Assembly (NCBI GenBank): GCA_965637545.1
Contig: OZ281495.1
Span: 7,998,001 to 8,062,000, forward strand
Direction: 5' to 3'
Length of the DNA: 64,000 nucleotides
Origin: Phallusia mammillata
Lineage: Eukaryota
The notes below the pieces were generated by a model, which made no database searches, was not told the DNA's origin, and saw nothing but the letters and a program-made list of their open reading frames with translations. Shown piece by piece: positions 1 to 63,729 of the stretch; positions within the stretch are counted from its first letter, which is position 1; each line of letters opens with the position of its first letter. The translations under genes and the position numbers were made by a program.

Positions 1-3000
1 GTGAGAAACAACGAAATTCTTGAAACCATGATAAGGAAGACTAATAAAAGCGTCCAAAGCAATCGAAAACTGATGTGGTTGAGTCTAATCTTTCTACTGG
101 TGATTTTCACTGTCGGATTTGTCACCCTTCATTTCTCGGTACGACTGAACAAAAGTTGATTTGTTCAGCAATGTCATTCTCCATTAGAAAACTTTTAGGC
201 AAAATATCCCGAAAGACTCAATAAAATCAAAGTTTTGTTAACGATATATATTGTTTATAAAACAGGAAAAATTGTCGGCACATAAAAATTACATTTGTTT
301 TTCACCAGATTTCTGCTAAAGTGGAAATGGAAACAAGACATGGTAAGACTGGACCATTTCATTCATATACTGTGTTAGCGTCTAAACTTTGCAAAAGTCG
401 TTTGCTTCGAACTGATAGTCACGAACGAAAGTTATGCCTACTCAAACTTTAAGTATGCCGATATTTTGCTGTAGTTAGTTTAGTTTATTTGCACTTAAAT
501 CAAACAAAATAGATGATGGTAACACAAAGTTGTGCGTGCGAGGCAGCGAATCATTCTGTCAGTCACCCCTGTAAATCACCATGCATTTTAAAGTAGAAGA
601 CAAATTAAGGTCGTAAGAAAAAACTGTGTTTTGTGAGGATTTAAAAAAAACCTCGCGTCTCCCTTTTACACAATCGTTTTCTCGAAATGAATGATCCCAA
701 GCTGTAACAGTATGAAAAGGTTGCGTAGAATGAATGATCCTGAAATAGCGTCAGGAAATAATGCATTCACACGAAACTAAAACTACGATGCTTCCTCGAA
801 GTAGGTTGATTGTTGAGTGTCGAATCGTGATCAAATTGTTATGAAGGGACTGCTTGGCTATTAGGCTATACTTTTGCAAAACTTGACAATATAGAAAGCC
901 TTTGCAATGAATAAAAGTTTAAAACGTTCGACTACACTCTCCATGTGGAAAGGTAATATTAAGGAATCAAGTCGCCGAAAATGTCCCTTTGCGGACCAAG
1001 CTTTGCGGTCCTTATGGTTTATGTAATAAGGACCAAGTATCTCCCTGGGAGGTCCTTTGTTTGCGCCAGCGTTTACAAGTCCAAACACCTCCCAAGAAGG
1101 TCTAAGTTGCGCCATCGTGGCTACTGCGGAGCAACGGAGAGGAGCAACGGCGCGGCGCGGAGCAACGGCGCAACTGAAGCGTTGCAAAGGGAAAAAAGGG
1201 GCTGAAGTCTATAATTTATTTGTTAAATCGACTATAATCTATTTGTCATGTGGCCTTTTTAATGTGGCTGCAAACAATATAAGTTTCATTTACAAAACTC
1301 AAAGCCGAGCTAAAGCAAATCTAAAACATCTTAAGGCATCACGTAACTCCTGACACCAAACAAACTACTTTACACAAAACCTTCCGCATAATGATTGATT
1401 CCAACTATAACGACAAGATAGTTTCTGTAAAACGATTTATCTTGAAATAAGGTCGTATTTAGGTTTAATTAATTGATTGGTGCAAAAATAGCAACATGTG
1501 GAGGTTTCATAAGCGTTGCTTATAGAAACAACCACATGGAAAATTGTACAATGTATTTAAGATACTTCCTTTAAGCAGAATGCTTGTTGAGTTTCGACTC
1601 TTGAATAAAGTGCTGATAAGTGGATGGTCGGTTTAATATCATATCTTAATTATGAACAAATGTTGAACTTAAACAATCAAATTTTCTCCATGATCCTGCA
1701 TTGATTAACATAAAAACCTGTCTACGTTTCAATAACTTATAGCCTCTCTTATATGTTTTTGAAATGAATCTTAACTTCAAGCGTTCCTGTCCCCTCCTAA
1801 CTAACACATTCGCCGTATTTTGTCAGCATTGCATAAAAACCGTGTTAAAAATGAGTTTGTTGTAACGTAAGTATTTGTCTTATTCGTTTAGGCACATTGC
1901 AGCACAACATGTCATCCCTGGAATCGAAAATGTTTGACTTTCAAGGTAAAACAAAGACGCAATTTACATTTTCATTTGACCACAGTTCCAAAAGTGTAGC
2001 TTTGTCTTTGCTTTTATGTTTTTTATCGGGTTTCGGGCTTGTAATTTCTGATTCGGTCAGGTAAACAACAGGGTTGTCACTGATGTACGTTCACTGATGT
2101 ATAAGTGTCAGTTTCATAATCAAAGTATTATCGTGTATCCATGTTTAAACATGTTTCCTCATCTAGCGATGAGTGCAAATTATTCGAGACGTCTCACCGG
2201 AACCAACAACAACATCGAATCTATTCAAACAACATTGATAGCTTTGAACGGTAAAACTTTGTTATACTATTACCACGTTTCTTATGGTGATTTTGAAGGT
2301 GTGGAGTACAACTTGCAAATCCCACATATATGTGTTTATCATCGCGAAACCTTGATGTAAAACTTATTTGACACGTGTACCTGCTATTTTTTTCGGCTTG
2401 AAATAATTGTGGAAAAGTAACTAAGATAACCTTTATGGATTTGATGGTTGTGATAAAATACGCGACATGAAATGGTTTCGTGAAGCGTTTCTTGTCAAAA
2501 TTACCACATGAAAAATTGAACAATGCAGTTAAGATACTTCCTTGTGGCAAATTGATTGTTAAGTGTCGACTCCTAAATGAATTGCTGGAAAGCGGATGGT
2601 CGGTTTAATATTACAACAATAAACTCTTTAGTCGCCGAAAATGTCCCTTAAAGTTCTGAAAGTTATCATAATTTATTTGTTAAATCGACTATAGTCTATT
2701 TGTCATGTGGCCTTTTTAATATGACACAGTATCAATAGCAAATACAAAACGTAGACATTACCACGTATATTACTTCTAACGTACATCATACAGTTTGTTG
2801 ATTATAACAAGCGTATGGTTTTCATGAGACTTGATTTGGAAAATCACATTTAAATCAAAGTAGTTACGAGTCCAGCTACAGAGGTCACGAAGCAATCCTG
2901 CCATATTGCATAAGCTTATCTTGCGAAACTTTTGTTGAACATTCGAAACTGCGCATTTTAACTATTTTTTGAAATCAAAATGCAGGTCAACTGGAAAGAA

Positions 3001-6000
3001 AGCTTAGTTCCGTGTCAAGCGATTTGGAAACACTTAAACAGCAACATACAAATCATCAAAGTTAGTGACTTAAACATCTGCTTAATGGTAAGATTTTAAA
3101 CCCTAAAACATGCAATGTTTTTGTATTCTACACCAGCTATGTGAAATAAAGACATTTTCAAATTTTGAGCCAATAACGTATTTTAAGTCATGCACGTTAC
3201 GAATGTAGTTAAAAAAACGGCGTTTTTAATCCGCAAAATGATTGATCCCCAAAACAACGACAAGATAGCTAATAATGTGTTTTTAAACCGTGCTCGGTGA
3301 GAATGTGATTAGAAATGCGGTGGTTTTTTGAACATAAATAACCCGTTTTCCTAGGTTGTTAGATAAAATGTATTGGATCGTGCAATCGAATTAATAACTG
3401 CCTTCGGTTCACCAGATGTGGCTGCAAACAATATAAGTTTCATTTGCAAAACTCAAAGCCGAGCTAAAGCAAATCTAAAACATCTTGAGCATCACGTAAC
3501 TCCTGACACCAAACAAACTACTTTACACAAAACCTTCCGCATAATGATTGATTCCAACTATAACGACAAGATAGTTTCTGTAAAACGATTTATCTTGAAA
3601 TAAGGTCGTATTTAGGTTTAATTAATTGATTGGTGCAACAATAGCAACATGTGGAGGTTTCATAAGCGTTGCTTATAGAAACAACCACATGGAAAATTGT
3701 ACAATGTATTTAAGATACTTCCTTTAAGCAGAATGCTTGTTGAGTTTCGACTCTTGAATAAAGTGCTGATAAGTGGATGGTCGGTTTAATATCATATCTT
3801 AATTATGAACAAATGTTGAACTTAAACAATCAAATTTTCTCCATGATCCTGCATTGATTAACATAAAAACCTGTCTACGTTTCAATAACTTATAGCCTCT
3901 CTTATATGTTTTTGAAATGAATCTTAACTTCAAGCGTTCCTGTCCCCTCCTAACTAACACATTCGCCGTATTTTGTCAGCATTGCATAAAAACCGTGTTA
4001 AAAATGAGTTTGTTGTAACGTAAGTATTTGTCTTATTCGTTTAGGCACATTGCAGCACAACATGTCATCCCTGGAATCGAAAATTTTTGACTTTCAAGGT
4101 AAAACAAAGACGCAATTTACATTTTCATTTGACCACAGTTCAAAAAGTGTAGCTTTGTCTTTGCTTTTATGTTTTTTATCGGGTTTCGGGCTTGTAATTT
4201 CTGATTCGGTCAGGTAAACAACAGGGTTGTCACTGATGTACGTTCACTGATGTATAAGTGTCAGTTTCATAATCAAAGTATTATCGTGTATCCATGTTTA
4301 AACATGTTTCCTCATCTAGCGATGAGTGCAAATTATTCGAGACGTCTCACCGGAACCAACAACAACATCGAATCTATTCAAACAACATTGATAGCTTTGA
4401 ACGGTAAAACTTTGTTATACTATTACCACGTTTCTTATGGTAATTTTGAAGGTGTGGAGTACAACTTGCAAATCCCACATATATGTGTTTATCATCGCGA
4501 AACCTTGATGTAAAACTTATTTGACACGTGTACCTGCTATTTTTTTCGGCTTGAAATAATTGTGGAAAAGTAACAAAGATAACCTTTATGGATTTGATGG
4601 TTGTGATAAAATACGCGACATGAAATGGTTTCGTGAAGCGTTTCTTGTCAAAATTACCACATGAAAAATTGAACAATGCAGTTAAGATACTTCCTTGTGG
4701 CAAATTGATTGTTAAGTGTCGACTCCTAAATGAATTGCTGGAAAGCGGATGGTCGGTTTAATATTACAACAATAAACTCTTTGCAACCATAAACTCCTTC
4801 GCACAAAAGGTTTCGCAAAATTAATAAAATGCGCTAGCCGAAAAGCGCTTTGAAAGTAAAACCATAATTTTGTCCCAGATCATATTTTCAAAAGTTTACA
4901 AATTCGAACAAGGTTTTTTTAAGCCAATCACAATGGAGAACGTTTGCGGGTCACGACTCATTTTAACCAATCACAACACAGCTTGCGTATTAGTTCTTTT
5001 ATTGTAGGACACCTGGTGTAGCAACCAATAGTCCTTAGATTCGAAATATGTTTAGCACAGTTTCGTAATGGTTATAAAAGGCTAAATGATTTTGTGACTT
5101 AAAATGAAAAAAATGTCAGCAGAATGGTGTTAAGTGTGAAAACACTCCATTCATGAAGCGTATATTGCACAAAAGTCATTTTAGACTCAATACAATTTTT
5201 GAGTGTATAAATTACCACATGTGAAGAATATAAATTATATGTGCATAATTTACTACCAGATAAAACCTAATGGGTTCACACCTTCAGTTCAACTATCCTA
5301 AGTGCATCAGTCTTTACCATGTTTTGACGCTAAAAATGTTTCTTTGTCCTCTTCATACACAACTGGCATAAAACATTGCATCGTCGACAATATTGAAGTC
5401 AAACCGCTCAGCAACCTGGAACGTGACGTAACGAAAACCCGCAAAATTGCGCTCTTGTGATTGGCTGGGCCTAGGAGTATAAGTTCGAAACCATTTTTGG
5501 AAATATGCCCCCGGTCGTTAGTTTGTTACTTTTTTATGCTCATGGGAGAAACAACGGCTGAATACTATATGCTTACAATGCGTTTGTAGTGATGTGACGT
5601 TGTTATGGATGTTTTGTATTTGTTTTCCAGACTGGGTACTTTTTAGTTGTGACTTTGAAAGTGGTTTGTGCAACTTCACTGATGATTTGAGCGCTGATTT
5701 TACTTGGACAAGGCATTCTGGGTCCACGCCTTCAGATGCTACAGGTCCAAGTGTAGATCATACACTTGGAACTACTGGAGGTTAGTACTCAAGTATGAAA
5801 AATGGGAGAAATAGTTAACAATACCAAAAAAGCCATATAACTTTAACATTTCTTAGATTTTACCTGCATAAAAACACATCTAAACTTGTTCAATTTACAA
5901 ACCACAATCTGACGATAAAATGCAGTGAAATAATCCAATTTTAATTAAGCTTGGTACTTTATACAAAAGCAAAAGTTATAAAATAACTTATACATTTTTT

Positions 6001-7445
6001 TGAAAAGGGGCAGTATATATATTTCTTTACTAAATGCTGTATATTTTTAAATAGGTCACTACATGTACATAGAAACGAGTGACCCTCGACACAGTCTTGA
6101 CAAAGCAAGATTTGTTTCACCAATATTGCCAGCAACCAATGGTAAAAAAGTGACATAATTTTCCATGTCATTATCTTTTTTTCTGGTGAATCAATAAAAA
6201 AGTTGTTTGTTATGTAGCGATGTAGCGATTTATGTATGTATCGATTTAATCCCCCCCCCCCCCCCAAAAAAAAAAAACATTTTTTTCAAATTTACAGACT
6301 AAAGATATTCTTCAACGCACAAATGTTAAACAAAGGCTTATTCAAACGGTTTGCAAATATATTTTTTTACAGATGTAGTGAATCCCGGTTCTAGTGCTTT
6401 TAGATTTTATTAATTGAAGTTTCTGCATTTCCTGAAAGCTTGTTTAGACACAGTGTAAACGTAGAATAGACCTAATATACGGTTCTAAAACTGCCATTAA
6501 TCCACGAAATAATTTCAGGAAGACGGTTTTGGTAATCTTCCTCGCTTTTTTGCTGGTTTAGACACACACAGTTAAGCTTAATTAAGCATATACACGATTG
6601 ATTATGTGTTTTTAACTAGTTGTTATTTTGAGTTATCATATAACATTATTGAAATGAATGTTTTTTTTACAGGTCAATGCCTTCAGTTTTACCACCATAT
6701 GTATGTAAGTATTAGAAAGACTACTTCCAAAAAAAAATTGCTTCAAAGTATCATTAAAGGCCATTAAACAGAATCACTTGCAAATTCACACCTTAATAAG
6801 TTTAAAATGATTTTAGATTTTACTAGAAATGACGATGTTATTTTTGCAAACGACAATAGAGCAGAACCCAACCACCATTTTGATCCCATAAAACCACAAA
6901 TCCGTCAAAGCAATTAAAAAACATGTATATATATTAACACCTAAATAGGGCACCGTAAATCTCCTATTTAAATACATTAAACGACACAGATTTGTTTGTA
7001 TAGGGCAAGCACATTGGGATATTGAAAGTCTATTTAAAGAGACCAAATCGTTCCAATGCATCAGTATGGAGCCTGAGCGGCAGTCAAGGTAAGAGATACA
7101 TTGTATCTGTTGGCAAAACAAACAAACGTGATTTCCATCTACAAAAAGGAGGACACATTATTGAAAAGAAGATGTAAAAATACTTACGCCCCTTGGTTTT
7201 TGTTAAAAAGAAGGACATGTCCTCCAAAAAGAGGATGTATGGTAGGCCTAACTAGGTCACTTTGATTTTATATGTGATACAGTTTAAACCAAATATTGTT
7301 ATCAGGTGACGTTTGGTCGTTAGGAAGCGCAACTATTACTTCGACGGAGCCCTTTCAGGTTGTGTTCGAGGGAACAATGGGCGCAGATTACGAAGGTGAC
7401 ATTGCGATTGATGACGTAATAATCAGACCTTTTAACTGTTGTTAA
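1..7445 (+). CDS. Gene A (5'-partial): type II membrane protein, TM + coiled-coil stalk + C-terminal MAM domain
   Basis: GT-AG exons: <1-138 ([27 protein letters not shown]), 309-342, stalk 1892-1945, 2167-2250, 4045-4098, 4320-4403, MAM 5631-5780 ([29 protein letters not shown]), 6055-6141 ([15 protein letters not shown]), 6673-6704 ([10 protein letters not shown]), 7004-7088 ([19 protein letters not shown]), 7306-7445 ([18 protein letters not shown]). Phases are consistent. A degenerate stalk exon ends at 952. Confidence 0.85.
985..1191. mobile_element. Small GC-rich insertion with CCCTTTGC/GCAAAGGG ends (piggyBac-like MITE?)
   Basis: 8-bp inverted termini and internal ggagcaacgg repeats. 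The paralogous sequence at 2630-2720 lacks it and has cccTTAA at the corresponding site. Confidence 0.4.
1262..4782 (+). repeat. Near-identical ~1.37 kb tandem duplication (1262-2629 / 3416-4782) duplicating two stalk exons
   Basis: Direct comparison shows only a handful of substitutions; duplicated ORFs at 2097/4250 and 2221/4374. Confidence 0.95.
5631..7445 (+). CDS. MAM domain exons of gene A
   Basis: Canonical MAM motifs CDFE, WTR, TGPxxDHT, GxYMYIETS, CLxFxYHMYG, GDIAIDDV across 5 exons. Confidence 0.9.
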
Positions 7446-7670
7446 AATCCTCACGTGTATGTCGTCATTGTATTACGTGAGGATTTAAATTTGATGCCCG
7501 AGGGCATATTCATCCTATGTTTAGGACACATTTATTTCACAATTTTGTTATTTTTGCAAACATGTAGTTCGATCTTTTAACACTTACTCCACACTCATTG
7601 TCCAATGACCACAGAACTGAATATGTATTTGTTTTACTAAACACAAGCTATAATTAGGCCTTTTTCGTGT

Positions 7671-7676
7671 AATAAA
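7671..7676 (+). promoter_or_regulatory. Polyadenylation signal of gene A
   Basis: AATAAA ~225 nt after the stop; conserved at the homologous position after gene C (40653-40658). Confidence 0.6.
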
Positions 7677-14829: not shown

Positions 14830-14945
14830 TTACGCAAATCGTTTTGGGCTGCTTGATGGGAAATCCCCTGGAGTGCAGAAATTGCCGAGTCTGCAATTGT
14901 TACACGGAAGCGGAAGAACTTTCCAAACACAAATCAGTATATAAA
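14830..14945 (+). promoter_or_regulatory. Gene B promoter: C/EBP, NF-kB, ETS and TATA motifs
   Basis: TTACGCAA 14830-14837, GGGAAATCCC 14858-14867, tandem CGGAAG 14905-14916, TATATAAA 14938-14945; ATG at 15066; module conserved upstream of gene D. Confidence 0.65.
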
Positions 14946-40000: not shown

Positions 40001-40425
40001 CAGTTACTGTTCGTCATTTTGTTAAATCTGACAACATAATACAAGCAAATTGTTTCAGGATTGCTTTAATTCCGGCAATTTTTAGTTTTTATCAAAATAA
40101 ACTTAACTTCCAATGTTCAAATATTTAGCAAATAATTTTTTTCATACAACCCTAAAGTTTGGCTGAAAAATTGGATTCAGCGTTGCCGAACCCCAGGGGT
40201 TCGATCAAAACCCGGTTTAGAACCACTGTTATAGAACTACGCCACATTGTTTTAACATATTACATGTTCAGCTTACCTGTGTTATCAGGTGACGTTTGGT
40301 CGCTGGGAAGCGCCACTATGACTTCGACGGAGCCCTTCCAGGTTGTGTTCGAGGGAATAAGGGGCACAGATTACCAAGGTGACATAGTGATTGATGACGT
40401 ATCAATCAGGCTTTGTAACTGTTGA
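34061..40425 (+). CDS. Gene C: apparently intact type II membrane protein, TM + short coiled-coil + MAM domain (~347 aa)
   Basis: Exons 34061-34115, 34658-34818 ([25 protein letters not shown]), 34990-35023, 35289-35372, 35660-35743, 36014-36097, 36615-36668, MAM 37329-37478, 37758-37841, 39130-39161, 39559-39643, 40289-40425. Total 1044 nt, open frame. AATAAA at 40653. Confidence 0.88.
38342..38984. mobile_element. Degenerate hAT-type MITE
   Basis: CAGTGATTTTCGACC..AAAAAGCTTGGGAAGCCGTG termini resembling other local CAGTGGTT/AACCACTG elements. Confidence 0.4.
39858..40228. mobile_element. hAT-type MITE
   Basis: TAGTGGTTCTTAACC / GGTTTAGAACCACTG termini; imperfect 8-bp TSD ctatataa/ttatagaa. 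Confidence 0.7.
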
Positions 40426-48482: not shown

Positions 48483-50664
48483 ATGAATACACAGAACCGT
48501 GATCTGCCTGGAATGAAAATGGAACAAAATAACTATGGTATGTAGGATTTGTTTTGTTTAAGTTGAAGATAAATCTTAAATTTCAAAATCTTGGCTGGAT
48601 GCGGGCTTGACCTAAATATTTTTGTTTGCCCTGAGACGATGTTAACCCGAATCAGATCAACTTCTGGTTTGCAGCGAGTTATGTTTAAGGGCAACTTTAC
48701 GAAAAAAAATCAAGCCGAGCTTTTTTTATTAATTACAATTGAGACAGTTACAAGCCCAAGTTCCAACTTTTGCGCATTTTCTACATACTTGTAATTTATT
48801 CCAATATGTGTGTACACCCGGTGTGTGGTTTAATTTGTTGCGTACAGTCTGACAACCCGGAGATTTTTTGTATATGTGCGTGTAAAGTGACAAAATTTAC
48901 GTTAACTGAACATACGACTAGTGTTCGGCCTTATTCAGGGAAAAATATTCAGGTTTAGAATAGGTTTTCTACATGTACTTTCGGATTCGACTGAAAATTT
49001 GCATTATTGTGTGTAAGTTTTCTAAGCTTCCGTACTTTTGAGAGCGTTTATTCAGAGCTGTTTTTGTTGCAATATTATGAACCACCCTCGAAACCTTGCA
49101 TTTTTGTGTCCCTTTCTCCTAACTCTTGTGTCTTTCGAAACGTATCACCAATGCTAGTTTTATCCAACCAGCAATTAAGTTACATTGTGTGTATCTTTCT
49201 ATTGATATTGGTTATCTCTAGCTGCATAACAATATGATGCAATAGATAATATGCCGATGTAACGCACTTGCTCAATGTTGACATCACTAAAAAAAAAAGA
49301 AATTTAGTTTACAAGGTTTTAAACATATCAAGTCACATAAACTTCTCATGTTGTAATATTTTTTACTTTGTTTTGTACTTTGCAGAAACGTTTCAAGGCA
49401 CCCCTGCAGTGAAAAATAACGAAAAACTTGAAAAGATGATGATTGAAACACAAAAAAAAACACAACTCTTCATTTCTCGGTACGACTACGCAACAGAAAG
49501 TCTTCTCCGCGTTAATGTTTTAAACACATCGGTTTCAGGTCATAATCAAACTATTGTCGTGTATCCACATTTTAACCTTGCTTTCTTTTAATCAGCAATA
49601 AGCGCAAATTATTCGAGTCGTCTCACCGCAGCAAACAACAACATCGAAAATATTCAAACAGCATTGGCAGCTTTGGAAGGTAAAATTTAGTCTCGTTATT
49701 AATGTACCGTTTTAGGCTCTGGGGCGATCCTACGAAACTTATATAAGTTTATCTTGCGAAACTTTAATTTTAAACATTTTCGATACTTACCTAATTTATG
49801 TTTAGTCGAGTCTGTTGTACAACTTGCTGGGGGGGTATTTTTGAAAGGAGTTGATTAACAATTGTTGAGTTCGTTTTAAAGCAGAACAAATTTGAAATGT
49901 GCTTGAAAGCTAAGTTTCGCGTTAAAGTTCAAACAATAACTGATTGGAAATATAAAAAAAAGATTGCTTTGCAATTGAGCGAGAAAATCGAGGTGTTAAG
50001 AGGAACTAATCGATTGTACAATTGCCTATAGATATCATGGATTTTAGGTTGTGGAATAGTTACAGACTTGTAACTTAAAATTTCATACTTTTTCTAAAAC
50101 AGTTTGTTAGGACATTTAAAAGGAAATACTTTGAGTTTTTTGGTAAAAGTTTGGAAATTTCAAATCCTAGGTCAACTGGAGAGAAATCTAAGTTCACTGT
50201 TCAGCAGTTTGAAATCATTAGATTGCAAATTAAGATCTTTTACAAACATTATGCAACAACAACTATCATAATGTTTAAAAGAAATATTATGCCATTGAAG
50301 TTCTGTCTGCAACAAGTAGACAGCTAAAAAGGCCTTTTTTTAAGGGACGGTTTGTATGGTTACAAGTTTGAATACAAACCTACGTTCCAAATGATATTGT
50401 GGTACAAGAAATACAGCATAAAGTGATAACCTTGCCCAAAATTCGTTGCTATTTAAGTCACTAGTTTTTGTCAGATGTAACACTCAAGGCAAGGGTAAAC
50501 AGCAAACACTGGTTTGCGTTTAGCCATAACCTAAGGGACATAATGATTAATAAAAAAAAATGCTGATGATTTGAGCGCACATTTTACTTGGACAAAGCAT
50601 TCCGGGTCTACGCGTTCACGTGGTACAGGTGCAAGTGCAGATCATACACTGGGAACTACTAAAG
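48483..50664 (+). pseudogene. Gene E: deleted C-type receptor remnant lacking the TM
   Basis: Exon 1 48483-48537 intact; exon 2 49386-49479 is 67 nt shorter and lacks the TM; stalk exon 49596-49679; 5'-truncated MAM exon 50563-50664; no further MAM exons. Confidence 0.8.
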
Positions 50665-52483
50665 GTAAGTACTCAAGTATCTTGCAAGAAAAAAGGGAGA
50701 ATTAATCAACAGAACTAAAAAGTGCCATACAACTTTTATATTCGTGCCAATCTAACTCCTTAAAAACACACTTAAACTTGACATCATCACATTTGTACGT
50801 CGGAAACCACAACGATACATAGTAACGACCCCTTGGTATCTATAACTACCAGTCTCCATATGAGCCTTTTGTGCTTTGGAACGTAACATGTCCTCACAAG
50901 AATGCAGACACACGGTCATTAATTCTGATATTATTGTTTTAAGTTGTTGTTTCTTGAAACGCGAGTCGCCACAGAAAGTTGTGTTGAATATTTTAAGTTT
51001 TTGTGGGTCACCTGTAATCGTAATTTGTAAAGCTGTTTCAAATTTGGTTCTTAATTATCGTAAAAAATGTTACGTGTTTATAATCGTATTGTGGAAACCT
51101 CTTTTGCATGTTTATATCCGTGTGTAACGAAGCGGGCGTTTTGCCTTTTTTCTCGCTCTGTCGTTGTCGCCTTATAAGCGAGTTTTTCCTGTTGCGCGGT
51201 CTTCTATTATTGAACTGCTGTTAAATAAATCATCCGCTTTCGTATAAAGTTGAAAGCATTTGCGTTTTTGATTTCAGTGTTTCCAATTTTGGTTTGCTTA
51301 CAACTTTTAAAAATCGAAAAAAATGTAACTTGCCTAAACATTTAACGCATGTTTTTGACTGCACCATTTTTATTTCATTTGCAATCACGTATTTATCTTC
51401 AAAGTGTGCTGTAAATAAAGAAAAATTGCACTTTGATTTAAAACTGCAGTTTGTCAGGGAGTTACCATGGATTAAATCTAAAGCAATAGCTTCGTATACG
51501 AAACACTCATGTGTTATTGTCTTAAAGTAGGAAATTCTTAACCAGGGGTTGCATACTTGTTTCTAGTGGGTGCAAAAATGCTGAATTATTGGGATCGTTG
51601 AATAACAGGTAATTCCAAGGTAACGAATCAGTTTCACAAACAATAGCATCAAAAAGTGAACAACCATCGTTTTCAGTTTTAACTTTAACTGGTGTGTAAT
51701 AGATAAAATATAAATAGTAAAACCGCTGTACCATGTTATAGTTTTGAGAAACCTCGTATTGAATTGTGATAAACCAGCCAAGGTTTTTGTTCCATAGGTA
51801 AAGGCAAGCTCGTATTTAAGGCCCGACATCGAAATTTTAAAAGTTAAAATGTGAAATTAAAAAGTGAAAAAATAAAAGTGAAATTTTGGCGCATAGGATG
51901 ACGAGTGTGAAGCCAGGCTCATTATAAGCCCGTTCCATTCAAACTTCAGCCCGAAGCCGACAGAAAAGGGGCGGGCTAATTAAAACTTGTGCTCAATGAC
52001 GAAGAAAAGGTTTAAATGCAAAGATTCCAACAGAGCTTAACCAGTCACAATGTGTAAAAGAAAAACGACAAAAGTCAGGTCAACCTTCACTTTGTATCCA
52101 CAACTAGAATGATTGTTTCGTTCGCCTGTGACTGCAATACGACAAACATACTGTTTATTATAAGTTATACACAAAATTGCTCTTGGTTATAATTAAGTGG
52201 CAAAAACACTTTTTTTAGTTTGTTAAAATGTTGCACCTGGTAATTGAAACATAGGTGCATTTTAATAAACAAGAAAAAAGCTTTCTTTTATTTAAATTAT
52301 TAGCCGAAAATATATCAGGGTGCAAATGTTGGAAACCAATCCGTGTTATCCAAGATACCCAGTCGCTTTTTGCACTACAGCGGTTTTTTATTCCGAACAA
52401 AGATTTGTGACGGAAGTCTGACACTAACTAGCGACAGAGAGCTGAAGGCAGAAAACCCTTCGCTGAATGTAAACTCTCATCTA

Positions 52484-52593
52484 TTGCGCAAACCGTGCTT
52501 GGCTGATTGATGGGAAATCCCCTGGTGTGCAGAAATTGCCGAGTCTGCAATTGTTACAGGAAAAGAAGAAGTTTTCAGGAGTCGGTACATAAA
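52484..52593 (+). promoter_or_regulatory. Gene D promoter: C/EBP, NF-kB, ETS-like and TATA-variant motifs
   Basis: TTGCGCAA 52484-52491, GGGAAATCCC 52512-52521, CAGGAA ~52557, TACATAAA 52586-52593; ATG at 52707. Confidence 0.6.
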
Positions 52594-52706: not shown

Positions 52707-55700
52707 ATGACTGCATCGGACAATGGCACGTCTGAAATTCCGATGGAGTTTTTGCTAAACGGTAAGTAGCAGTTTTTAAATCTTATTTGCACGAAAGCGT
52801 ATATAACCCTGAAAAGCCGAAGTTATATTTAAGTTAAACAGATCTTTTTAGAATTTTTAAATGACTTAAATCAAATCATATTCAAAAATCATATTCAAAC
52901 AACTAGAACTTGTGTGATTAAACTGAGAGTTTGTACAAAGTAGTTTCTAACCAACTGGTTATCCCGTAAACTGCATATTTTTCCTATATTTGTCTTACTG
53001 GAAAGAGAGAAAATTTACCTGTCAGTGACATCACTTACAATATTAATTTAATATTTGCAATTTGAAGCTTTTCATTTTATCCTTGTTTGCAATAATTCCG
53101 TTTCGTCATATCGTTTGCAGAAACGGATCACGGCATTAGCGAGATGGAAAACAATGATAGACGTGAAAAGAAAGTGATGGAAGCATTAAAAAGTGTCCAA
53201 AGATATCTGAAACTTATGTGGTTGTGTCTTCTCTCCCTGCTTCTGATTTTCGCTATTGGATTATTAGCTCTTTATTTTTCGGTGAGATTGTGTAAAAGTT
53301 AAGTCAACATTAAGCACGATTGCGTGAACTAAGATCATAATCCTAATACTTGTGTTCCGCATTTGACAAACTTTGCTATAATTGGAATAATAACAATCAA
53401 AAGCAAGCAAAGAAGTTTAAGGTTAGGTCTTTATGTTTATCGAGGATATGAGAAAAATTTTAATTAGTGTTTCCAATTTATTTTACGACCATCGATACTC
53501 TGCAAAAAGTAATTAAGACAAAACGCTTGAAGCTGTAAAGGAAAAGATGACAATTATGAGCGACAATTGCGTATCGGTGTGCTCAATGGAATTAACTTAC
53601 CATACTAAAGTTGAGTTGAGTTAATGTTTTCTGTTCAAAATTTTGTTAAAATTAACCAGGCCGGAAATAGCTGCGCAAGACATTTCAAAGCCTAAAAGAG
53701 TTACGAGTAGAAATAATGAATTTTTGGTTATATTCAAGTGAAAATTTCTTCAAATAATTTCCTTACCTTATAGCGATGTTAAGGTCAAGTTCATTTAAAC
53801 GTCGTAAACATCATTTATTAATAAATTGGTTTGCAAATGAGACTGAATTGGCATTCATTTGAAATATATTCGCTTTAACTTGTTAGATTTCTGCTAAAGT
53901 AGAAGTAGAGAACAAACGAGGTAATGGACCACCTTTAATGACAAATCAACAAAGTTATGAAGCTTCGTTTGACGATGAATTCAAAATCCCAGAAGGTACG
54001 AGATATAAAAGCGTTTGACTCCGATTTCAACCAATCAATGCACATTTTTTATAATAAATGAAAGTAAAACAATTATCTTTTCCAAGAAAAAAATATTTCA
54101 AAACTGCAACGATCAATTTCGTTTTTATTTAACATTATGCCATGTGTTACACTTTTCAGACAATGTACAGATGGACATGCAAAAAATGGAGAATGATTTC
54201 AAAAGCTTATTGAGTCAAAATTCCATGTTCCAAGGTAATTTTTGTTTTACCTTCATCTTCATCTTCACTTCAGTCTGCTTATACTATTGGGTCTGATTTA
54301 ACATTTTAAACCTTAGCTTTCCAAGACAAGTTGTAAGTTTGGCCAGGCTTTTTAAGAATGGGTTCGATTTTGGGTTCAGTTTGAATAAAACAAGCTTGAT
54401 TTGGACATGACGTTACACTAGGCCACATTTATGTCGCTATTTCACCTTTTGTTTTGGCAATAAAGTCTAATTCGGCCATTATTTTCAAAAATAGAGTTTG
54501 GGATAGCTTGCAACTCTGAAAAGTCAGTGAGTAAAAAATACAAATAAATGTGTCGTTCGGTCTAATTTTGTGAACATTTACGTTTTTAGATTTGGTTCAA
54601 CAGAACTTGACGGCGATTGCTGACGGTTTGGGGAGACTAGAAAATGCTTCAAGAAATACAAAAGGTGATATGGAAAAATAGTATATTGATGTCTAACCTT
54701 GGTATCGTACTAAGCCACTGAGAGCATTGATCCAATGATGCTAGTACAGAGTTGTAAACGAGTCTTAAACTGAAACCCGAACCCGAAATAACAAGATGGA
54801 AACCCGGCTTGAACCCGAACCGTTTTTGAGAACTTTAAATTTCAAGCCTCTGGAAAGACTAAGACAACAAATAAAAAAACAATAATAGACAATGGTCGTT
54901 AACATGACGTTTTTTGACTGTGGACATGCGGTCAAGTCCAGCGCTAAGCGAGTTACAATTATAACAAAAATACTGACACAGAATGTAAAGGCAGACCCGA
55001 ATCAAGCCCGTTTTTTTGTTAAAACCAAGCCCAAACCCGGACCGAAAGCCCGGCCCATTTAACAACTCTGTGCTAGTACAGTAGTTAGCTGTGAAAACTT
55101 CAAATCGAGAAACCAATAAATATCAGATCGTTTTTGCTATTGAATTCATGACTGCAATATGTAGCATAGTATGGGCCTTGTACTTTACCACATTGGTACC
55201 TCATAAAGCGTCCCTACAGCCGACCGGATAATAAAATACCGATTCAACGAGTTTCAAATAATCCAGGGAGCTCTTTATTGTCATGGCTTGAGTTATGAAT
55301 TACGATCCTGAACCATGAAAGCCAATAACATTTGTTATTACACAAAGTGATTTGTTTTACAGAGCTGCTTTAAAATAGTTTAACCAACTCCAGCTGCGAC
55401 TTATATACAAAAGACAATAATAGACCATGGTCGTTAACATGGCGTTTTAGGGCTGTTGACATGAGATCAGATCCAACACTTAGCTAGTTAAATTCATAAA
55501 AAAAAATACTGACACAAAAAGTGAGGCCCGAATAAAGCCCGTTTTTTGATAATACCTAATGTCGAACCCGGAGCTAACCCGACCCGACTAACAACTGTGC
55601 TAGTAGTTATAGCTGTAAAAACTTCAAATCGAAAAACTAATAAAGCACATTCCATAACAATCTGATGTTTTGTGTAAATTTTTGCTAACTTTTGGTAAAA

Positions 55701-58700
55701 AGGTATTTTGTTTTTCTAAGTCATTTGGGGTCAGCTCAGCCAACTCCAATCGCGACCTGCATCGGTTAAAAAGTAATTGCGCGAAATGAAAGGTTAAGTT
55801 AATAACTGACAATTATACAGTTCATTCTCACTGTCATTGTTACCAATTCATATGTTTAACATTCGGAAATAGCAAGCTATTTGTTGTTGTTGTTTTTGTG
55901 AATTTAGATAATATACAACAAAACCTAACTGAAATTGTCGGCATACTACACAGAGGGGAAAATCAAGAAGGTATGAAAAACATACAATGAACTAAATTGT
56001 TGTGCTTATTGCATTTTACCATATTATACTTGAATTGTTTTAATAAAGCGACATAATAACTGCCTGTTTCCAACTTATAACTCTGCATTTTTTTCCATTT
56101 TTAGACTTACTTCAACACAATCTGTCCGTTATAACTGACAGCTTGGATAGGCTTGAAAGCGGTGTCACAAATACAGAAGGTAACTTGTATGTACAACACT
56201 TGTTTCACGCTTGTACGTTTTAACTGTTCGTTGAATAATATGTAGACACCTAAGTTTAAAATTCTAGAAACTGATTTTATATTACCAACGCATTCTTGAT
56301 TATCAATTCCAGTGTGGACTGTGTTTTTTCTCAATAAGGCAAAAAAAGATGAATGAAATTTAATGTGTTAAACCGAGTCTTCAGATTGCCATCATCAAAA
56401 AAAGGATTCTTCCTATTCTACGTTAAAATATAAAGCGCTTCTAAAATTGTCTAAAATTGTGTTCATGATTGCAACATGTAGCATAAAATACGAGGCTTAC
56501 ATTGCCACCTCAAAAAATGGTTCACAACCGACCGGATAATCACATACCGATTAAACGAGTTTCGAACAATCCAGGAAGCTGTGTATTGCCATGGCTTGAG
56601 TTAGGAATTGCGATCATCAACCATATAAGTAATAAGCTATTGCTGCCACGAATAATAACAAAGTTAAAGAGCTCTTCTGACAAATGGAATTTTATTCCGA
56701 CGTTTCGACGTCCTATACAGGTCGTCTTCATCAGGGTAAGCAACACTGAATGCGATTAGTAAAGTGCACAATAATATATAATTTTTCCGCTCGTGGGCAA
56801 TACAGAAAGGACTGGTTCGAACTCATCCAAGTTTGTTCAAGAGATAGCACAGTTGCCGCCCCTGTCCAACGAAGAGGTATTGGTGTCGTATGACGTCGTG
56901 TCACTTTTTACAAGCGTTCCAGTGGAACTGGCGATGGACAACGCGTCATCCAGGATTTGATGCGACTATAGCCTTTAAGACAGAACACCATAACCTCATT
57001 GGATATCGTAGACCGTTTGCGGATTTGCTTCGAGCAATCCTTTTTAACATTTAAGGGAAGCTTTTACCAGCAGGTTCAAGGCACAGCGATGGGTTTCCCG
57101 GTCTCTGTGGTTGTCGCAAACATGACAATTAAAGCGCTTGAGGAAAAAGCCTTATCAACATTTGCCAACCCACCAAGATTCTGGCGGCGATATGTTGACG
57201 ACATTTTTTGTGTGATTGCTAAGAACAAGGTTGAAGCATTTCTACGGCATGCTTCGGTTTACCATGAAACTCCAATTGGTAAACTGTCTTCCATTGTTAG
57301 ATATTCAAGTCACAAGAACCGATGACGGTGTCTTGTACTCGAGAGTGTACCACAAGCCAATCAATACCGCAGCAGTGGCGTATCTAGGATCGGGGCGGCG
57401 GCAAACGCGCCATCTGGCGGTAGACTGTGTATACCTCTCTGTTAGCACCCGTGGTGCCTTCTAAACTCGCAATATCAACTAAATGCTGGTTAGCTGCTTA
57501 GTTACCCTGTGAAGCCCTTACCGTTGCTGTAAGTAACGAACGTCATAGTCACGATTCGATCGTATAGATGTAACACGTGGTATGTGTTACATCTATACGA
57601 GATGTAACACATACCTTTTTTAACGAAATCGAATAAAGAATGGAAGAAATGTAAAATATTCACTTACGTAATACGACACAGGGAATATACACTATCTACA
57701 TAAAGTCTATATGTCTATTTTTTTCGAAAATTCTACAATTACGTCGTCGTAATTTAATTTAATGTCGCGGTGAATAAATATAGAGGTAAGGCCATTCAAT
57801 CGATGTTCACCCATAGAACGCAGATAATTTTTTATGTATTTTAATGTACTAAATTAACGCTAACTTAATGCGGTTGTGACTGTCTCGACACAGTAAGTGT
57901 TTCCTCCTAATCATATTGTGAATTATCTTTTTGATCTCATCATCCCACATCCCAGAAAAGAGGGGTGGTTCGTTACCTAAATGATCAGGCACAACGCTTG
58001 TGCACTCATAGCGACAAAGAGAGGCGGGGCTGGCAAAGGTTCGCAAATCCTAGAAATTTAACGGCTACCCCAACTGGATTCTCTGTGATCGAATTGCAAC
58101 TTTTAAACAGGTGACCCAACCAAAGACAGAAGATTTTGTGAACTGACGGATATTTTACGGCGTATGTTGCGTGACTTTGGCATAGCGGTTGGCGTCCAAC
58201 CTGCCAATACTCTCCACACGCTACTGAGTCACCCGAAACATCTAATCAATACTTTTGAACATCGAAGTGTTGTATATTATATTCCCTCCGCCGTGTGTCC
58301 GTTAATATATACCGGGGAGACTGGAAGGTAACTCAACACCCGAGATAAAGAACATCAACGGGATGTTGCCAACAGCGACGCGAAGAAGTCGGCCCTTTCC
58401 AATCACGCGGTATTACAAGGCCACCGTATTCAATGCGGAGTCTTGGCCCGGGAGCCTGACTACAGGAAAAGACTATTTCGTGAGTCATGGAATGATCATC
58501 AACGGGGCAACACAATGAACATCAAAACAGACGTGATACTTTCAGCGTGCTACAGGACCTGTTCAAAGATTAGAGGCCCAATAATTCGTTATCGCGCGGT
58601 GTTTTCGTTGCGTTGTAACGTGCTTGCGTTCCATTCCTTTTTCCCTTTGTTTATCGTGCACTATACTAGTCGCATTCAGTGTTATTTACCCCGATGAAGA

Positions 58701-61700
58701 CGACCTGTTTCAGTCGTCGAAACGTCGGAATAAAATTACATTTGCCAGAAGAGCTCAACAATGTAAGCCAATAACATTTCTTATTAGACAAAGTGATTTG
58801 TTTTACAGAGTTGCTTGAGAATAGTTTAACCAACTCCAGCTGCGACTTGCAATCAGTTTCAAAAGATTTGCGTGACATGAAAGGTAAACTAACTTAAGTG
58901 ACAACTTGTTGTGTATTATTTTGTAAAAATATAGTTCGTAAATTTGTTTCAATTTGTCTCTGTTTTAAGATATTATGCGCCACAACTTTACTGAAATCGC
59001 AAGCATTCTAACAGACGGAAGAAAAAATCAGGAAGGTATTGAAAAATTTGTTTGAATTTATGATGTTAAATGAATGTGAACTATTTTTCATTCAATACAT
59101 ACAAATGCAATCACAAAAAAAAAACATTTTTAGGGTCAAAAGTATTTTTAACTGCGAATAACTTACAAACAGTAAAAAACGAAATAGTTTTGGCACTTGG
59201 AATGCTTAGATCAAAATAGAAATGGGCGCCGTGTCTATTTTCTCTACAAGCATTCCAACAAATTCCGCAAGTAAACCCCACAAGGGGATACAATTACTTA
59301 TTGCACGATCTTTTGTTATAATGAAACGCTTAACCATGACTAAAAAGTCCTGTTCGTGTTGCAATGCAAAATTTGTTTTTCTTTTTATTTTTGGTTCATA
59401 AAATTTATTAGATAGAGTCTAGATTCGCCGACATCGTTGACTCATGTGCGCAGTTGTGACTTTCAAACACAACTTTTTTGTATTTAATAGTTACCTTTTT
59501 TCAAATATGCGTTGAAGGCATGGCCTTAAACGACAGCCGTAATAGGTCGCTGCAAATGTTTCCCGGCCCTGCTTTCAACTTGACTAAGTAGCCTAAAACA
59601 TTTTACTCACATAAAAAAAGTAATCAATATTAGAATGCAACGAATGGTTGGTAGGAAAATACCCATATCCACTCTTTACACTCATACACACACAACAAAA
59701 GCCGGATCTATACTGCACGCTGGTTTCACTAAAGGTCGTCTCAAAGATAATTATGTTAATTAAATAGTTCGAAACCGCCACTCAATATATTCAACGAGTG
59801 CACGCCGACCTCACGTGGGCGAATAACCAATCACGAGCCTAGGTTATCAGGCCCATCCGGGAGTGGCAAATACTGCGGCGGAAAAATGCGACAGAACAAT
59901 AATGAATGAAAAATGAAACGATAACTGGAACGAACGGCGAGATAAACAAATCAAAACAACAACAAGTGAAAATATGTGGTTTGAGTGAATGAAAGACAAA
60001 GGTGTGAAAAATGTTAAACAAGTAATATAGGTGAAACGCATTTCTAAGATGGACAAATGTGAAAGCCGATTGTCCTTTTAAATATAATTACGCAACATTG
60101 TAACGATTGTTTTGTCATTTCTTTCGACCTCGCTGTTGCCGGTTGGTAGTGGGAGATGTTGAGGAGGTGCTTCCACTAGAAGCCTACTCCCCATAAACTG
60201 TATACTTTCTCCCCTAAACTGTAGGCCTCCACCATAACCCTAAGTTAAATGTTATCCTTCTCACTAACCCTAAGCCTCCAACCCTAATTGTTTCCTCTGT
60301 CCCAAACACAACTCTCCTTCCAATTGAAAAGTTTTCTTGGTTGTAGTCCTATTGTCGATTTCTTCCTCATCCTAAAATAATTATGACGGTTATTCCTAAA
60401 CTTTTCTCTTGCTTAAGTGATAACACATACTGATCTAACACTCATAAATTCATCTCAACGTAAAATAAAATGCTGTAACGAAAGTATACCTTCCTTTGAA
60501 ATTTCAAATGGTTTATATCGTAGCTAAAAGTGTTGCAACGTGATAACAGATACGCTTTAACACGCACAAATAAATCACAACATCACACTATTTTTTAACT
60601 TAAAAATTTTAAGTTTTTGTGAGTTATTTCAGGTGAAAATGTCGCAACGTAAACGCTTATCCTCTGATAAACCTAACAATCGTAGTATAAAGCAGTTCTT
60701 TTCTGGTAAACCGAAAACACGTACTGCTGCGCTAACCCCCGAAACCGCATCTGCAAACAGCACCACAAGTTCTGGGAACTGCATTTTTGGATATCCGTCG
60801 GATAGACGCTCGCGGGGCAACTTCTGCCAACCTATTCTGACTCTGGAAAGAGGTCGCTGCTGACTACAGTCTTGATGTGGGTAAACATGTCGCTATTGCA
60901 TGCGATAGAGCTGCTGCAATGATAGGCGGCCGAAATTCCCTCTCACAGCATTTGACTACACAAAATCCGATTACCTACACAGTGCACTGCCATGCGCATC
61001 GCTTAGTCCAGACGTGGAAGTACTTTTCAATTTCGCCGCTCAAGACCGCAAAACTAAGAAATGTAAACTGTTGATGTTGATTCGTCTGCGCGTAAATTAG
61101 TTAAAGCCTGCCAAATTGCTGGCTATCTCATGGTCAGGCCGTGATCGCAATGAAAGCAGAACTGCCTGCTGTACACGCTACGCTCCAATATTTTGCTACC
61201 GAGAAGAAAGATTGCACAGCAGTTGGTATTCTTCATTTAATTTGCTCCAAACGCTTTTTTTCTCCCTTTACTTGCTGAATGCTGCTTTGGTCCATCTCAA
61301 CAAGTTATCATTGTTGTTTCAAAAAGGTAGTTTTCACTTTTCTCACATGCAGTCGGCACTTTCGATATGCAGAAAAGAGATTAGGAGTATTGCTAATTCA
61401 GATCAGGTTTTAAGCAGCCTAAAACTTGAATGGGAGAAGATTCCAAAAATTTTACCAAGATCTCAAAATACACTTCTTGAAGATGATTTTAAACTGCTGC
61501 GATTCACCACAGAAACATACTGTGAGGCAGTGCTCTGTAATCTCGAAGAACGTTTCCCTGAGCCTGAGGTACTTTCTGCTTTTCGAATCTTTGATGCTAA
61601 TGAGATTCCCCTTGATACCCCTCAGCGCCAGCTTTATGGGAATAATGATCTCTCGCTGCTTATCAGAAGATTTGACATTGTTCCTGCTGAACAAACCTTG

Positions 61701-63729
61701 AAAGTACTAAATGACTATCAAACGTTGAAAGATAGAATGTATTCCAGCAAATGTTTACAGAGCTGCATCGACTTTGCTGCATCAATTCTTCTAGCAACCG
61801 CCTGGCCAGAGCGAGGATTTTCGACTCTATGTCGTATTAAAACCAAGCAACGAAATAGGTTACTGGATATCACCCTGAATGCTCTAATCAACATTTCGAT
61901 GAACGGTCCGGAGCAGCTCACAGACGAGGATGCACAAAAGATAGCTGAAAAGTGGCAAAAAACAAAGGACCGACGAACAGTGACAGTGCAAGCATTGAAG
62001 GAGTTAGAATCTGCAAACAACGAAGAAATGGAAGCTGGCGGATGGGAACGGGATTGCGAATCTGTTTTATTGCGTGAGATAGAACCTGAAAAAAATGTTC
62101 TGTGATTGTGCACCGCCAGTAGCCTAATAAATAATTCGTTTAAGCAAATATGGCTATTTGGGTATTTAAATGAAACACTTGCGGTCTCTTAAAACTACTT
62201 AGCGGTTACCCAAACCACCTTAAATAAACCTGCATGGGAGAAACAACGCCCAAATGCTATATGCTTACAATGGTAGCATTGTGACGTTGTAGATAGAGGG
62301 GATGCTTTGTATTTGTTTTCCAGTTGGGAAACTTTTCAGTTGTGACTTTGAAAGTGGTTTGTGCAACTTCACTGATGATTCGAGCGCTCATTTTACTTGG
62401 ACAAGAAATAACGGGTCCACGGCTTCAGACGGTACAGGTCCAAGTGTAGATCATACACTGGGAACGACTGGAGGTTAGTACTCAAATATGAAAAATGGGA
62501 GAATTCATTATTAATACCAAAAAAACCATATAACTTAAACATTTTTTAGATTTTACCTGCATAAAAACACACTTAAACTTGTTCAATTTGCAAACCATAA
62601 TCTGACGATAAATTTTTTTGAAATTATTTCTTCACTAAATGCTTTATGTTTTTAAATAGGTCACTACATGTACATTGAAACGAGTGACCCTCGACAAAAT
62701 CTTGACAAAGCAAGAATCGTTTCACCAATGTTGCCACCAACCAATGGTAAAAAATATATTATTCTCCATGTCATTATCTTTTTTTGGTGGATCAATAATA
62801 TAGTTGTTTGTTATGTAGTGATTTAATTTTATTCCCAAAAACACAAATTTTGCAAATTTACAGACTAAAGGTATTCTTTAACGCACAAATGTTAAACAAA
62901 GACTTGTTCAAACGGTTTGCAAACATATTTTTTACAGTTGTAGTGAATTCGGATTTCTAGTGCTTATATATATTTTTTAATTGAGGTTTCTTATTTAATT
63001 GAGACACAATGCAAACGTTGTATAGACCAAATATACGATTCTAAAACTGCCATTGCTCCACGAATTAATTCCAGGAAGACGGTTTGGGTAATCTTACGCG
63101 CTTTTTTGCTGGTTTAGACACTAAATATGCCTCTGTGTAGGAAAGTAAACCTCGGTCAATCCAGACCCATTTGGACCAAAACAATGTTGGTATATGACAA
63201 AAACACAAATTAACTGATGTCAATTAGTTAAAGCTTTTCCACACTATACACTCCACACAGTTAAGCTTAATTAAGCCTATAAACGATTGATTATGTGTTT
63301 TTAACTAGTTGTTGTTTTTTACGTTATCATGCATCAAAAAGTTATTGAAATGAATGTTTTTTTACAGGTCAATGCCTTAAGTTTTACAACCATATGTATG
63401 TAAGTATTAGAAAAACTACTTACAAAAACAATTAAATCGCTTCAAAGTAACATTTAAGACTGTTTAATGACTTGCAAATCCACACCTTGGCAAGTTAAAA
63501 ATGATTTCAGATTTCACTAGAAATGACGATGTTCTTTTTGCAAACGACAAAAAAAATCAAAAACAATCATACTTCTCAATACCTAATAGGGCACCGTAAA
63601 TCTCCTATTTAAATACATTAAACGACACAGATTTGTTTGTATAGGGCAACCACATTGGAACATTGAAAGTCTATTTAAAGAGACCAAATCGTTCCAATGC
63701 ATTAGTATGGAGTCTGAGCGGCAATCAAG
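52707..63729 (+). CDS. Gene D (3'-partial): chimeric type II receptor, B-type tail/TM/stalk + A-type MAM head
   Basis: Exons 52707-52761, 53121-53281 (TM), 53887-53920 (or -53995), 54160-54234, 54590-54664, 55908-55970, 56105-56179, 58809-58883, MAM 62324-62473, 62660-62746, 63368-63399, 63645-63729; last exon is beyond the window. Dead exons at 55363 and 55721 contain stops. Confidence 0.7.
54747..55070. mobile_element. hAT-type MITE
   Basis: CAGAGTTGT / ACAACTCTG termini; perfect 8-bp TSD tgctagta; partial duplicate at ~55410-55600. Confidence 0.85.
56692..56739 (-). ncRNA. Minimal type I hammerhead ribozyme motif in Penelope pLTR
   Basis: ttaccCTGATGAa-gacgacct-gtat-aggacgtc-GAAACGTC-ggaataa on the minus strand. 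Confidence 0.7.
58686..58733 (+). ncRNA. Hammerhead motif with core substitution (CCGATGA)
   Basis: taccCCGATGAa-gacgac-ctgtttca-gtcgtc-GAAACGTC-ggaataa. Confidence 0.5.
60633..62105 (+). mobile_element. Degenerate hAT transposase (ZNF862-like, hATC dimerisation domain)
   Basis: ACDRAAAMIG (DGAxxM-like), VHCHAHRL, LEERFP, ERGFSTLCRIKTKQRNRL; split across frames with internal deletions. Confidence 0.85.

Follow-up and report, generated by a model that had tools for sequence, protein, structure and literature searches.

A tandem cluster of predicted type II stalked receptor genes with MAM or unnamed bacterial/phage-type heads in Phallusia mammillata

Class A scavenger receptors (SR-AI, MARCO, SCARA3-5) are type II membrane proteins with an N-glycosylated coiled-coil stalk and a terminal globular head, and the type II C-type lectin receptors have a neck of repeats that is variable in length. 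FIBCD1, a glycan receptor at epithelia, is also type II and carries a head from outside the lectin families on a coiled-coil stalk. CD23 has a short N-terminal tail, a signal anchor, an oligomerising heptad coiled-coil neck and one C-terminal head (PMC6791321). We describe here a 64 kb stretch of the Phallusia mammillata genome (GenBank assembly GCA_965637545.1, contig OZ281495.1, positions 7,998,001 to 8,062,000 of the forward strand; hereafter the window), which is gap-free, eukaryotic, 36% GC and has short exons. It carries five paralogous genes on the + strand (A to E) with the predicted layout of tail, transmembrane (TM) segment, stalk and C-terminal head. The family is real and apparently undescribed.

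Exon models were obtained by scanning for phase 1-1 exons and were then completed by hand, all with AG/GT borders and open frames. Database searches and structure predictions were made exon by exon; joined translations were used for hydropathy, periodicity, the ratio of nonsynonymous to synonymous substitution rates (dN/dS) and a local BLAST of the gene B head against fetched loci, which was repeated exon by exon. The models confirm the preliminary description of this DNA, which had proposed five paralogs with a common front of a 55 nucleotide (nt) exon 1, a 161 nt TM exon and a 34 nt exon. Exon 1 was found in B, C, D and E, the TM exon is intact in B, C and D and clipped by the window edge in A, and the 34 nt exon is present in A to D. 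Genes B (33 exons, 953 amino acids (aa)) and C (13 exons, 362 aa) are complete and open. Gene A is open over 313 aa, with exon 1 and the first 23 nt of its TM exon lying before base 1, and gene D is open over 344 aa, its last MAM exon lying past base 64000. Gene E is a pseudogene, because a 67 nt frameshifting deletion has taken out the TM codons, leaving a 94 nt exon, most exons (including the 34 nt exon) are gone, and MAM exon 1 is partial; the same defects rule it out as a working gene.

The gene order is A, WSC relics, B, C, WSC relics, E, D. A self-BLAST matched 5490-13001 to 37200-45597 and 14716-20457 to 52367-59080, a segmental duplication of about 32-38 kb in which C is positionally the copy of A, and D the copy of B. 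Together with the one pseudogene, dead cassette exons and a 99.4% identical duplication within gene A, this supports the birth-and-death turnover suggested earlier.

Each protein has a single hydrophobic segment (residues 50-69) behind a 49 aa N-terminal tail. The net charge of the N-terminal flank is +3 to +5, against 0 to +1 for the C-terminal flank, which is rich in sequons. Since the positive charge lies on the N side of the single hydrophobic segment, a type II orientation with one signal anchor is predicted; a type III topology was rejected, as charge bias and sequons favour the opposite orientation. None of the tails has an immunoreceptor tyrosine-based activation or inhibition motif (ITAM or ITIM). 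A YxxF motif is present in the tails of C and E only; in B and D, the tail up to the juxtamembrane region is free of tyrosine and dileucine motifs.

The stalks are 92 (A), 647 (B), 117 (C) and 143 aa (D) long, or 103, 658, 128 and 154 aa with the 34 nt exon. Previous estimates of about 92, 575, 102 and 121 aa were right in that the lengths differ, and for A, and are replaced in B, C and D by the inclusion of five weaker cassette exons (B, 20350-20415, 21760-21843 and 25316-25381; C, 37038-37082; D, 58970-59035), which have good splice sites and open frames and no transcript support. The stalks contain 0-2 Pro and 0-1 Cys, and none has a run of four Gly-X-Y triplets, so that a collagen stalk was rejected. 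All four show a hydrophobic period of 3.52-3.55, reached by 0 of 500 shuffles for each gene, and the 168 nt cassette was modelled as a single helix (predicted local distance difference test score, pLDDT, 96). At 0.1485 nm per residue, rods of about 15 (A), 98 (B), 19 (C) and 23 nm (D) are predicted. The B stalk has 25 N-glycosylation sequons where 13.1 are expected (0/2000 shuffles). A single TM segment, the charge bias and the stalk period support the previously proposed type II arrangement of tail, TM, coiled neck and head, and we regard this architecture as very probably correct.

The cassettes encode 11, 15, 18, 21, 22, 25, 28 or 56 aa, lengths that fit heptad/hendecad units, and every stalk exon, like the first head exon, begins in phase 1. 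Therefore, duplication, loss or skipping of a cassette, or the joining of a head, can leave both frame and helical register intact. When the offsets between exons were randomised, the helical register across the exon joins was matched in 0/1000 trials for B and 8/1000 for D. A pair of 54 and 84 nt exons in gene A has been doubled by a tandem repeat of 99.4% identity, and stalk length is therefore still changing.

In its tail, signal anchor, coiled-coil neck and single C-terminal head, the family resembles the type II C-type lectin receptors (CD23, DC-SIGN/DC-SIGNR, langerin and CLEC4F), the neck being represented here by the stalk period and by the stalk exon that folds as a helix. Unlike these receptors, it has a MAM or unnamed head in place of a C-terminal C-type lectin domain, a stalk of up to about 650 aa in 24 cassette exons, and two unrelated heads on one front end. 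Type II topology, an N-glycosylated coiled-coil stalk (glycosylation being predicted here from sequons) and a terminal head are shared with class A scavenger receptors, but there is no Gly-X-Y collagen segment and no SRCR or C-type lectin head. FIBCD1 appears similar in being type II with a coiled-coil stalk and a head from outside the lectin families, and differs in that its head is fibrinogen-related and it is single-copy and conserved. The family would work like CD23, DC-SIGN and SR-A but lacks their defining heads and collagen.

The head of gene C is a MAM domain (Pfam PF00629). Exons 37329-37478 (31.3 bits, profile positions 1-39) and 40289-40426 (37.4 bits, positions 114-157) both exceed the curated cut-off of 26.4, and exon 37758-37841 weakly covers positions 44-69. 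MAM exons 1-4 of A and D are 72-84% identical to those of C or to each other. The assignment of MAM heads to A, C, D and E, and of an unrelated head to B, thus stands for the Pfam match in C and the lack of one in B, and is reduced in E to a fragment of MAM exon 1. In one patch of MAM exon 4, nine of ten columns vary among A, C and D (equalled in 26/5000 shuffles), which agrees with the variable head loops noted before, and RNA contigs differ further at this patch. The nearest solved structures for MAM exon 1 are enteropeptidase (the best PDB sequence match) and an insect class C scavenger receptor (Sf-SR-C-like, 8yt7).

The MAM domain of the insect class C scavenger receptor is itself the binding site of a protein ligand, and Drosophila SR-CI can recognise bacteria (PMC6191154). 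The family described here shares with these receptors (dSR-CI, Sf-SR-C) a single extracellular MAM domain, which they use for ligand binding. However, class C receptors have a signal peptide and CCP, somatomedin B and Ser/Thr-rich parts, whereas the present proteins are type II with a coiled-coil stalk and lack CCP: stalks with 0-1 Cys leave no room for such a domain, the sole hydrophobic segment precedes the stalk, and a stop follows the MAM domain in place of an anchor. Enteropeptidase (TMPRSS15) is likewise a type II membrane protein with a MAM domain, but SEA, LDLa, CUB, SRCR and protease domains are absent here, and A and C stop right after MAM.

Searches for full-length relatives returned little. 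A TM-exon profile had 0 matches among 1.84 billion representatives, the short query limiting what this means for other species, and TM and MAM exon-1 profiles, with the same limit of query length, had no match in metagenome contigs. Among candidates of 48-152 aa, the similarly short MAM exon-1 query found one fragment only (L187:1-761), which belongs to an unrelated animal MAM-LDLa-MAM repeat gene outside the A to E family. No description of this layout, or of these heads in such a position, was found in the literature, and the available parts of the ascidian MAM-domain literature describe no such family; the exon-by-exon searches likewise leave standing the earlier statement that no named family is recognisable.

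The head of gene B consists of 223 aa over six exons and carries the motifs DGGxDMYDxGN, GNLGADG and YGAxDPS. Its exons have no Pfam match, and PHROGs, Pfam and PDB sequence searches put no name on it. A search for full-length relatives with a B-head exon, limited by query length, gave no candidate, and an Atlas search had no usable match for a B-head exon or for a bacterial copy of the domain. The motif DGGxDMYDxGN was found in 66 viral contigs. Bacterial contigs with it number at least 120 and belong for the most part to Bacteroidota, Verrucomicrobia and Planctomycetota. A profile built from phage proteins alone finds exons 1, 4 and 5 of the B head in order (E 9e-12, 1e-8 and 0.003) and nothing else in the window, and nearly all bacterial matches hold both the exon-1 and exon-4 motifs at much the same spacing. 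The B head resembles this domain of secreted Bacteroidota/Verrucomicrobia proteins and aquatic phages in motifs, motif order and size (about 220 aa), and differs in being split over six spliceosomal exons and carried on an animal membrane stalk.

Bacterial copies are modules of large secreted proteins with Ig-like, PKD, HYR and type IX secretion system (T9SS) sorting domains. Phage copies are stand-alone or lie in long proteins with lectin-like LamG domains, and in two related phage contigs a stand-alone domain gene lies beside glycosyltransferase genes. In these two large phages (L190:3590-8879 and L058:4366-8242), the neighbours are glycosyltransferases (GT2/N-acetylglucosamine (GlcNAc), GT25, GT11), a 2-oxoglutarate (2OG) oxygenase, HPAT and a GlcNAc transferase. 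In several long phage proteins the GNLGADG part precedes DGGxDMYDxGN, a reversal of the two halves of the domain that points to circular permutation or tandem copies.

A phage homologue of the B head was modelled (pLDDT 93) as a beta-rich fold with one helix at each end. The model had no Foldseek match in PDB, matched only unnamed phage proteins strongly in BFVD, and reached no more than Z 5-7.5 with beta-sandwich domains from enzymes of carbohydrate metabolism (glycoside hydrolases, phosphorylases and lyases). These values lie in the range of common folds, so that a glycan-binding role of the B head is putative. Identification of the head as MAM or another jelly-roll lectin was rejected, no such fold having been matched. 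One of the B-head introns holds an inverted 101 nt copy (31644-31744) of a hAT-like element end that also lies at the junction in gene D.

Gene D is a mosaic of a B-type front and an A-type MAM head. Its exon 1 shows 89% and its TM exon 87% identity to B, compared with 55% and 68% to C, while its MAM exons are 90-94% identical to those of A and the MAM introns 84-89%. Synonymous differences between A and D affect 9/26 codons in the front and 8/94 in the MAM exons (Fisher p=0.002), and those between C and D 12/31 and 11/78 (p=0.008); the A-D contrast upholds the idea of swappable heads. Homology to the B-type intron stops at 59613. A hAT-like terminal repeat extends to 62232, and A-type intron homology starts right there, at 62233. 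The 8 nt beside the transposon end are not repeated on the other side, so that no target-site duplication is present and a simple transposon insertion was rejected. The simplest reading is that a deletion at or beside the transposon joined the B-type front to the head of the next A-type gene, and the swap looks like a deletion/fusion at a transposon end rather than a programmed exchange. The frame of D stayed open after fusion, since phase 1 is common to its last stalk exon and its first head exon. The stalk of B ends with 84 and 54 nt cassettes of A/C type ahead of its own head, and B is therefore also a mosaic. A D intron contains a retroelement relic (56660-58760, weak RVT_1 match at 56999-57322) flanked by an inverted repeat of about 105 nt, and in B this repeat recurs in a hairpin-like insert at 20139-20323.

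Two runs of one 2024 study, of unrecorded kind, contain more than 90% of the sequence words of 33000-41000, and probable RNA runs under the same species label next to none. In a contig search at 80% likeness, contigs from four studies (probable RNA runs) align to C's exons. One of 1570 nt links MAM exon 2, an exon-3-like piece, exon 4 and an exon-5-like end in that order; joints of MAM exons 3 and 4 occur in three runs and exon-5-like ends in all four, and a 711 nt contig joins the TM exon to a stalk exon. Some contigs read from the TM exon (34726-34824) or the 32 nt MAM exon (39128-39162) into intron-like sequence, for which intron retention, unspliced RNA and DNA are alternatives. The dN/dS is 0.31-0.44 in the front end, 0.45 for the B-D stalk, 0.46-0.97 in the MAM domain (between paralogs only) and 1.06 for the A-C stalk, over 44 codons. 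Within the 64 kb, the NF-kB consensus has just two occurrences, one some 200 nt upstream of B and the other at a similar distance upstream of D, both inside a conserved 40 nt block; none was found upstream of C or E.

We consider it an evenly balanced proposition that this is a lineage-specific, fast-turnover family of single-pass type II receptors whose members oligomerise and use their stalked heads to capture ligands on microbes or particles, and that cassette duplication and head fusion have diversified it. In the sequence, the common front consists of the 49 aa tail and one predicted signal-anchor helix, followed by a Pro-poor, collagen-free helical stalk of phase 1-1 cassettes and a C-terminal globular head. 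Unequal crossing-over, tandem duplication and, probably, a transposon-associated deletion have remodelled stalk cassettes and heads. By analogy with CD23 and SR-A, the stalk would oligomerise, probably as a trimer, holding several heads 15-100 nm off the membrane for multivalent capture. On hemocytes or exposed epithelia, the heads may recognise a repetitive external ligand, for which glycans of microbes or particles are the likeliest candidates. C-type copies would take up ligand through the YxxF motif, and the B/D-type copies, having no signalling motifs, may only tether it or need a partner. The NF-kB site, the MAM exon 4 patch and the YxxF motif are hints of a recognition role, and immunity is something we only infer.

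Several points weigh against this reading. MAM domains also serve adhesion and oligomerisation in many non-immune proteins. The register across exon joins is not significant in the short stalks (52/1000 for A, 144/1000 for C), and the structural matches of the B head have Z below the level that separates relatives from common folds. Among the listed contigs none spans TM to head, so that the expected spliced transcripts are seen as MAM exon joints and a TM-to-stalk join in paralogs; the contigs match A to E only distantly, mostly at 80-90%, and therefore come from other paralogs or divergent alleles. Values of dN/dS near 1 in MAM and the A-C stalk may reflect relaxed selection instead of diversification. 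The NF-kB promoters that had been proposed are present for B and D and absent for C and E, and the two sites are one inherited ancestral site. With that single site, MAM dN/dS not above 1 and tails devoid of ITAM or ITIM, the innate or self/non-self role put forward in the preliminary description is conjectural.

The same proteins could instead be adhesive or structural, their glycosylated rods acting as spacers in the glycocalyx, tunic interface or feeding mucus and their MAM heads binding each other or matrix, as in RPTPmu, MDGA and meprin oligomers, with drift within the tandem array producing the variation. MAM serves chiefly as a module of adhesion and oligomerisation, the stalk of B would be about 98 nm long and heavily glycosylated (25 predicted sequons), the tails of B and D have no Tyr or dileucine motif, bacterial homologues of the B head sit on adhesin-like proteins, and paralog transcripts in all four studies sampled would fit constitutive expression. 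Quick gene turnover, head exchange and a concentrated variable patch are, however, more typical of recognition families, and the NF-kB site of B/D and the endocytic motif of C/E also speak against an adhesive or structural role, which we regard as possible but rather doubtful. A role in gamete recognition or allorecognition, in which polymorphic MAM heads would discriminate self from non-self or act like the MAM domains of zonadhesin, a sperm protein, in sperm-egg-coat binding, would account for the variable patch, for the further variants there in RNA contigs and for dN/dS of up to 0.97. ZAN is among the MAM proteins listed in PMC4545420. The differences seen here, however, are between paralogs. 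The domain layouts of Themis, VC70 and fester/FcoR do not match either, and this explanation seems improbable.

Much of the array might also be decaying duplicates, with only one or two copies (C and B) functional, D an accidental, untranscribed juxtaposition, and the variable stalks and heads by-products of transposon-driven rearrangement. Gene E is dead, B and D hold dead cassettes, the interleaved WSC genes are partly broken, the junction of D lies on a transposon end with a retroelement relic in a D intron, and no RNA contig is close to A to E. Yet the retained exons of A to D are all open with intact splice sites, dN/dS of the B-D front and stalk is 0.44-0.45, and D keeps its frame, register and promoter, so that general decay has a slim chance, only marginally above that of the gamete or allorecognition role. 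Returning to ligand capture, it could extend to an undescribed, expanded recognition system of invertebrate chordates, in which a common anchor carries stalks adjustable by cassette duplication and possibly skipping, together with alternative heads, of which one would stem from bacteria or phages, as a germline repertoire of sensors of microbes or non-self; this larger claim we hold to be rather unlikely.

Coordinates of the receptor genes are collected in Table 1. The candidate exon at ~865-952 in gene A was rejected, as it has an in-frame stop. Between the receptor genes, and co-duplicated with them, lie WSC-like genes or relics (9939-13010 and 42105-47630, + strand). Exons 9939-10108 and 10202-10337 are open, and the exon at 12349-12424 resembles a signal peptide; frameshifts or stops interrupt other copies. 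The Pfam WSC match at 10935-11198 is weak (E 1e-4, below cut-off), and these are putative glycan-binding neighbours. An inverted copy of B's TM exon and flanking intron (12997-13541, - strand) is 96% identical to 15294-15838 and lies 1.5 kb upstream of B's ATG. Between B and C, at 32780-32920 (- strand), an aspartic-protease-like motif (ALVDTGAS, found by eye) probably marks a long terminal repeat (LTR) retroelement relic.

Table 1. Positions of receptor gene features in the window, and of phage proteins with reversed B-head halves
Feature	Position	Strand	Details
Gene A	1..7446	+	TM part 1-138; 34-nt exon 309-342; 5' end before window; open 313 aa
A, degenerate copy of C's first 84-nt exon	~865-952		
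A, recent tandem duplication	1262..4782	+	1262-2629 vs 3416-4782, 99.4% identical; doubles 54+84-nt stalk pair
A, stalk exons	1892-1945, 2167-2250, 4045-4098, 4320-4403	+	
A, MAM exons	5631-5780, 6055-6141, 6673-6704, 7004-7088, 7306-7446	+	stop in last exon
B, NF-kB consensus site	14858..14867	.	208 nt upstream of B's ATG
Gene B, front	15066..16383	+	exon 1 15066-15120 (55 nt), TM 15548-15708 (161 nt), 34-nt exon 16350-16383
Gene B, stalk	16652..27689	+	24 phase 1-1 cassette exons of 54, 63, 66, 75, 84 or 168 nt; 647 aa
B stalk, broken cassette copies	17515-17576, ~19511		first is 62 nt
Gene B, head	29136..32439	+	exons 29136-29281, 29425-29483, 30074-30179, 30900-31055, 31409-31542, 32370-32439 (stop)
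Gene C	34061..40426	+	exon 1 34061-34115, TM 34658-34818, 34-nt exon 34990-35023
C, stalk exons	35289-35372, 35660-35743, 36014-36097, 36615-36668, 37038-37082	+	last is least certain
C, MAM exons	37329-37478, 37758-37841, 39130-39161, 39559-39643, 40289-40426	+	stop in last exon
Gene E, C-type pseudogene	48483..50665	+	exon 1 48483-48537; TM exon 94 nt, 49386-49479; stalk exon 49596-49679
E, MAM exon 1	~50562-50665	+	5'-truncated
D, NF-kB consensus site	52512..52521	.	upstream of D, paralogous to B's site
Gene D, B-type front and stalk	52707..59035	+	exon 1 52707-52761, TM 53121-53281, 34-nt exon 53887-53920
D, stalk exons	54160-54234, 54590-54664, 55908-55970, 56105-56179, 58809-58883, 58970-59035	+	
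D, dead cassette copies	near 55360 and 55720		
D, junction	59614..62232	+	B-type intron homology up to 59613; hAT-like transposase relic, open reading frame 61116-62105
D, A-type MAM exons	62324-62473, 62660-62746, 63368-63399, 63645-63729	+	last exon beyond window
Phage proteins, reversed half order	L051:3386-6163, L062:229-3036, L047:3339-7256, L005:7625-11341, L039:1231-3963		

The stalked type II receptors of vertebrates (SR-A, CD23, DC-SIGN) use SRCR or C-type lectin heads, and the same engineering is found here with MAM and an unnamed bacterial/phage-type domain, in what is probably the sister group of vertebrates. The family offers natural variants for asking what a lone, stalk-displayed MAM domain binds, and, in the B head, what the widespread DGGxDMYDxGN domain does. 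It further documents how exons that are symmetrical and preserve register leave stalk length and head free to change. Should these proteins prove to bind microbes and to be induced, they would add a diversified receptor family to tunicate immunity.

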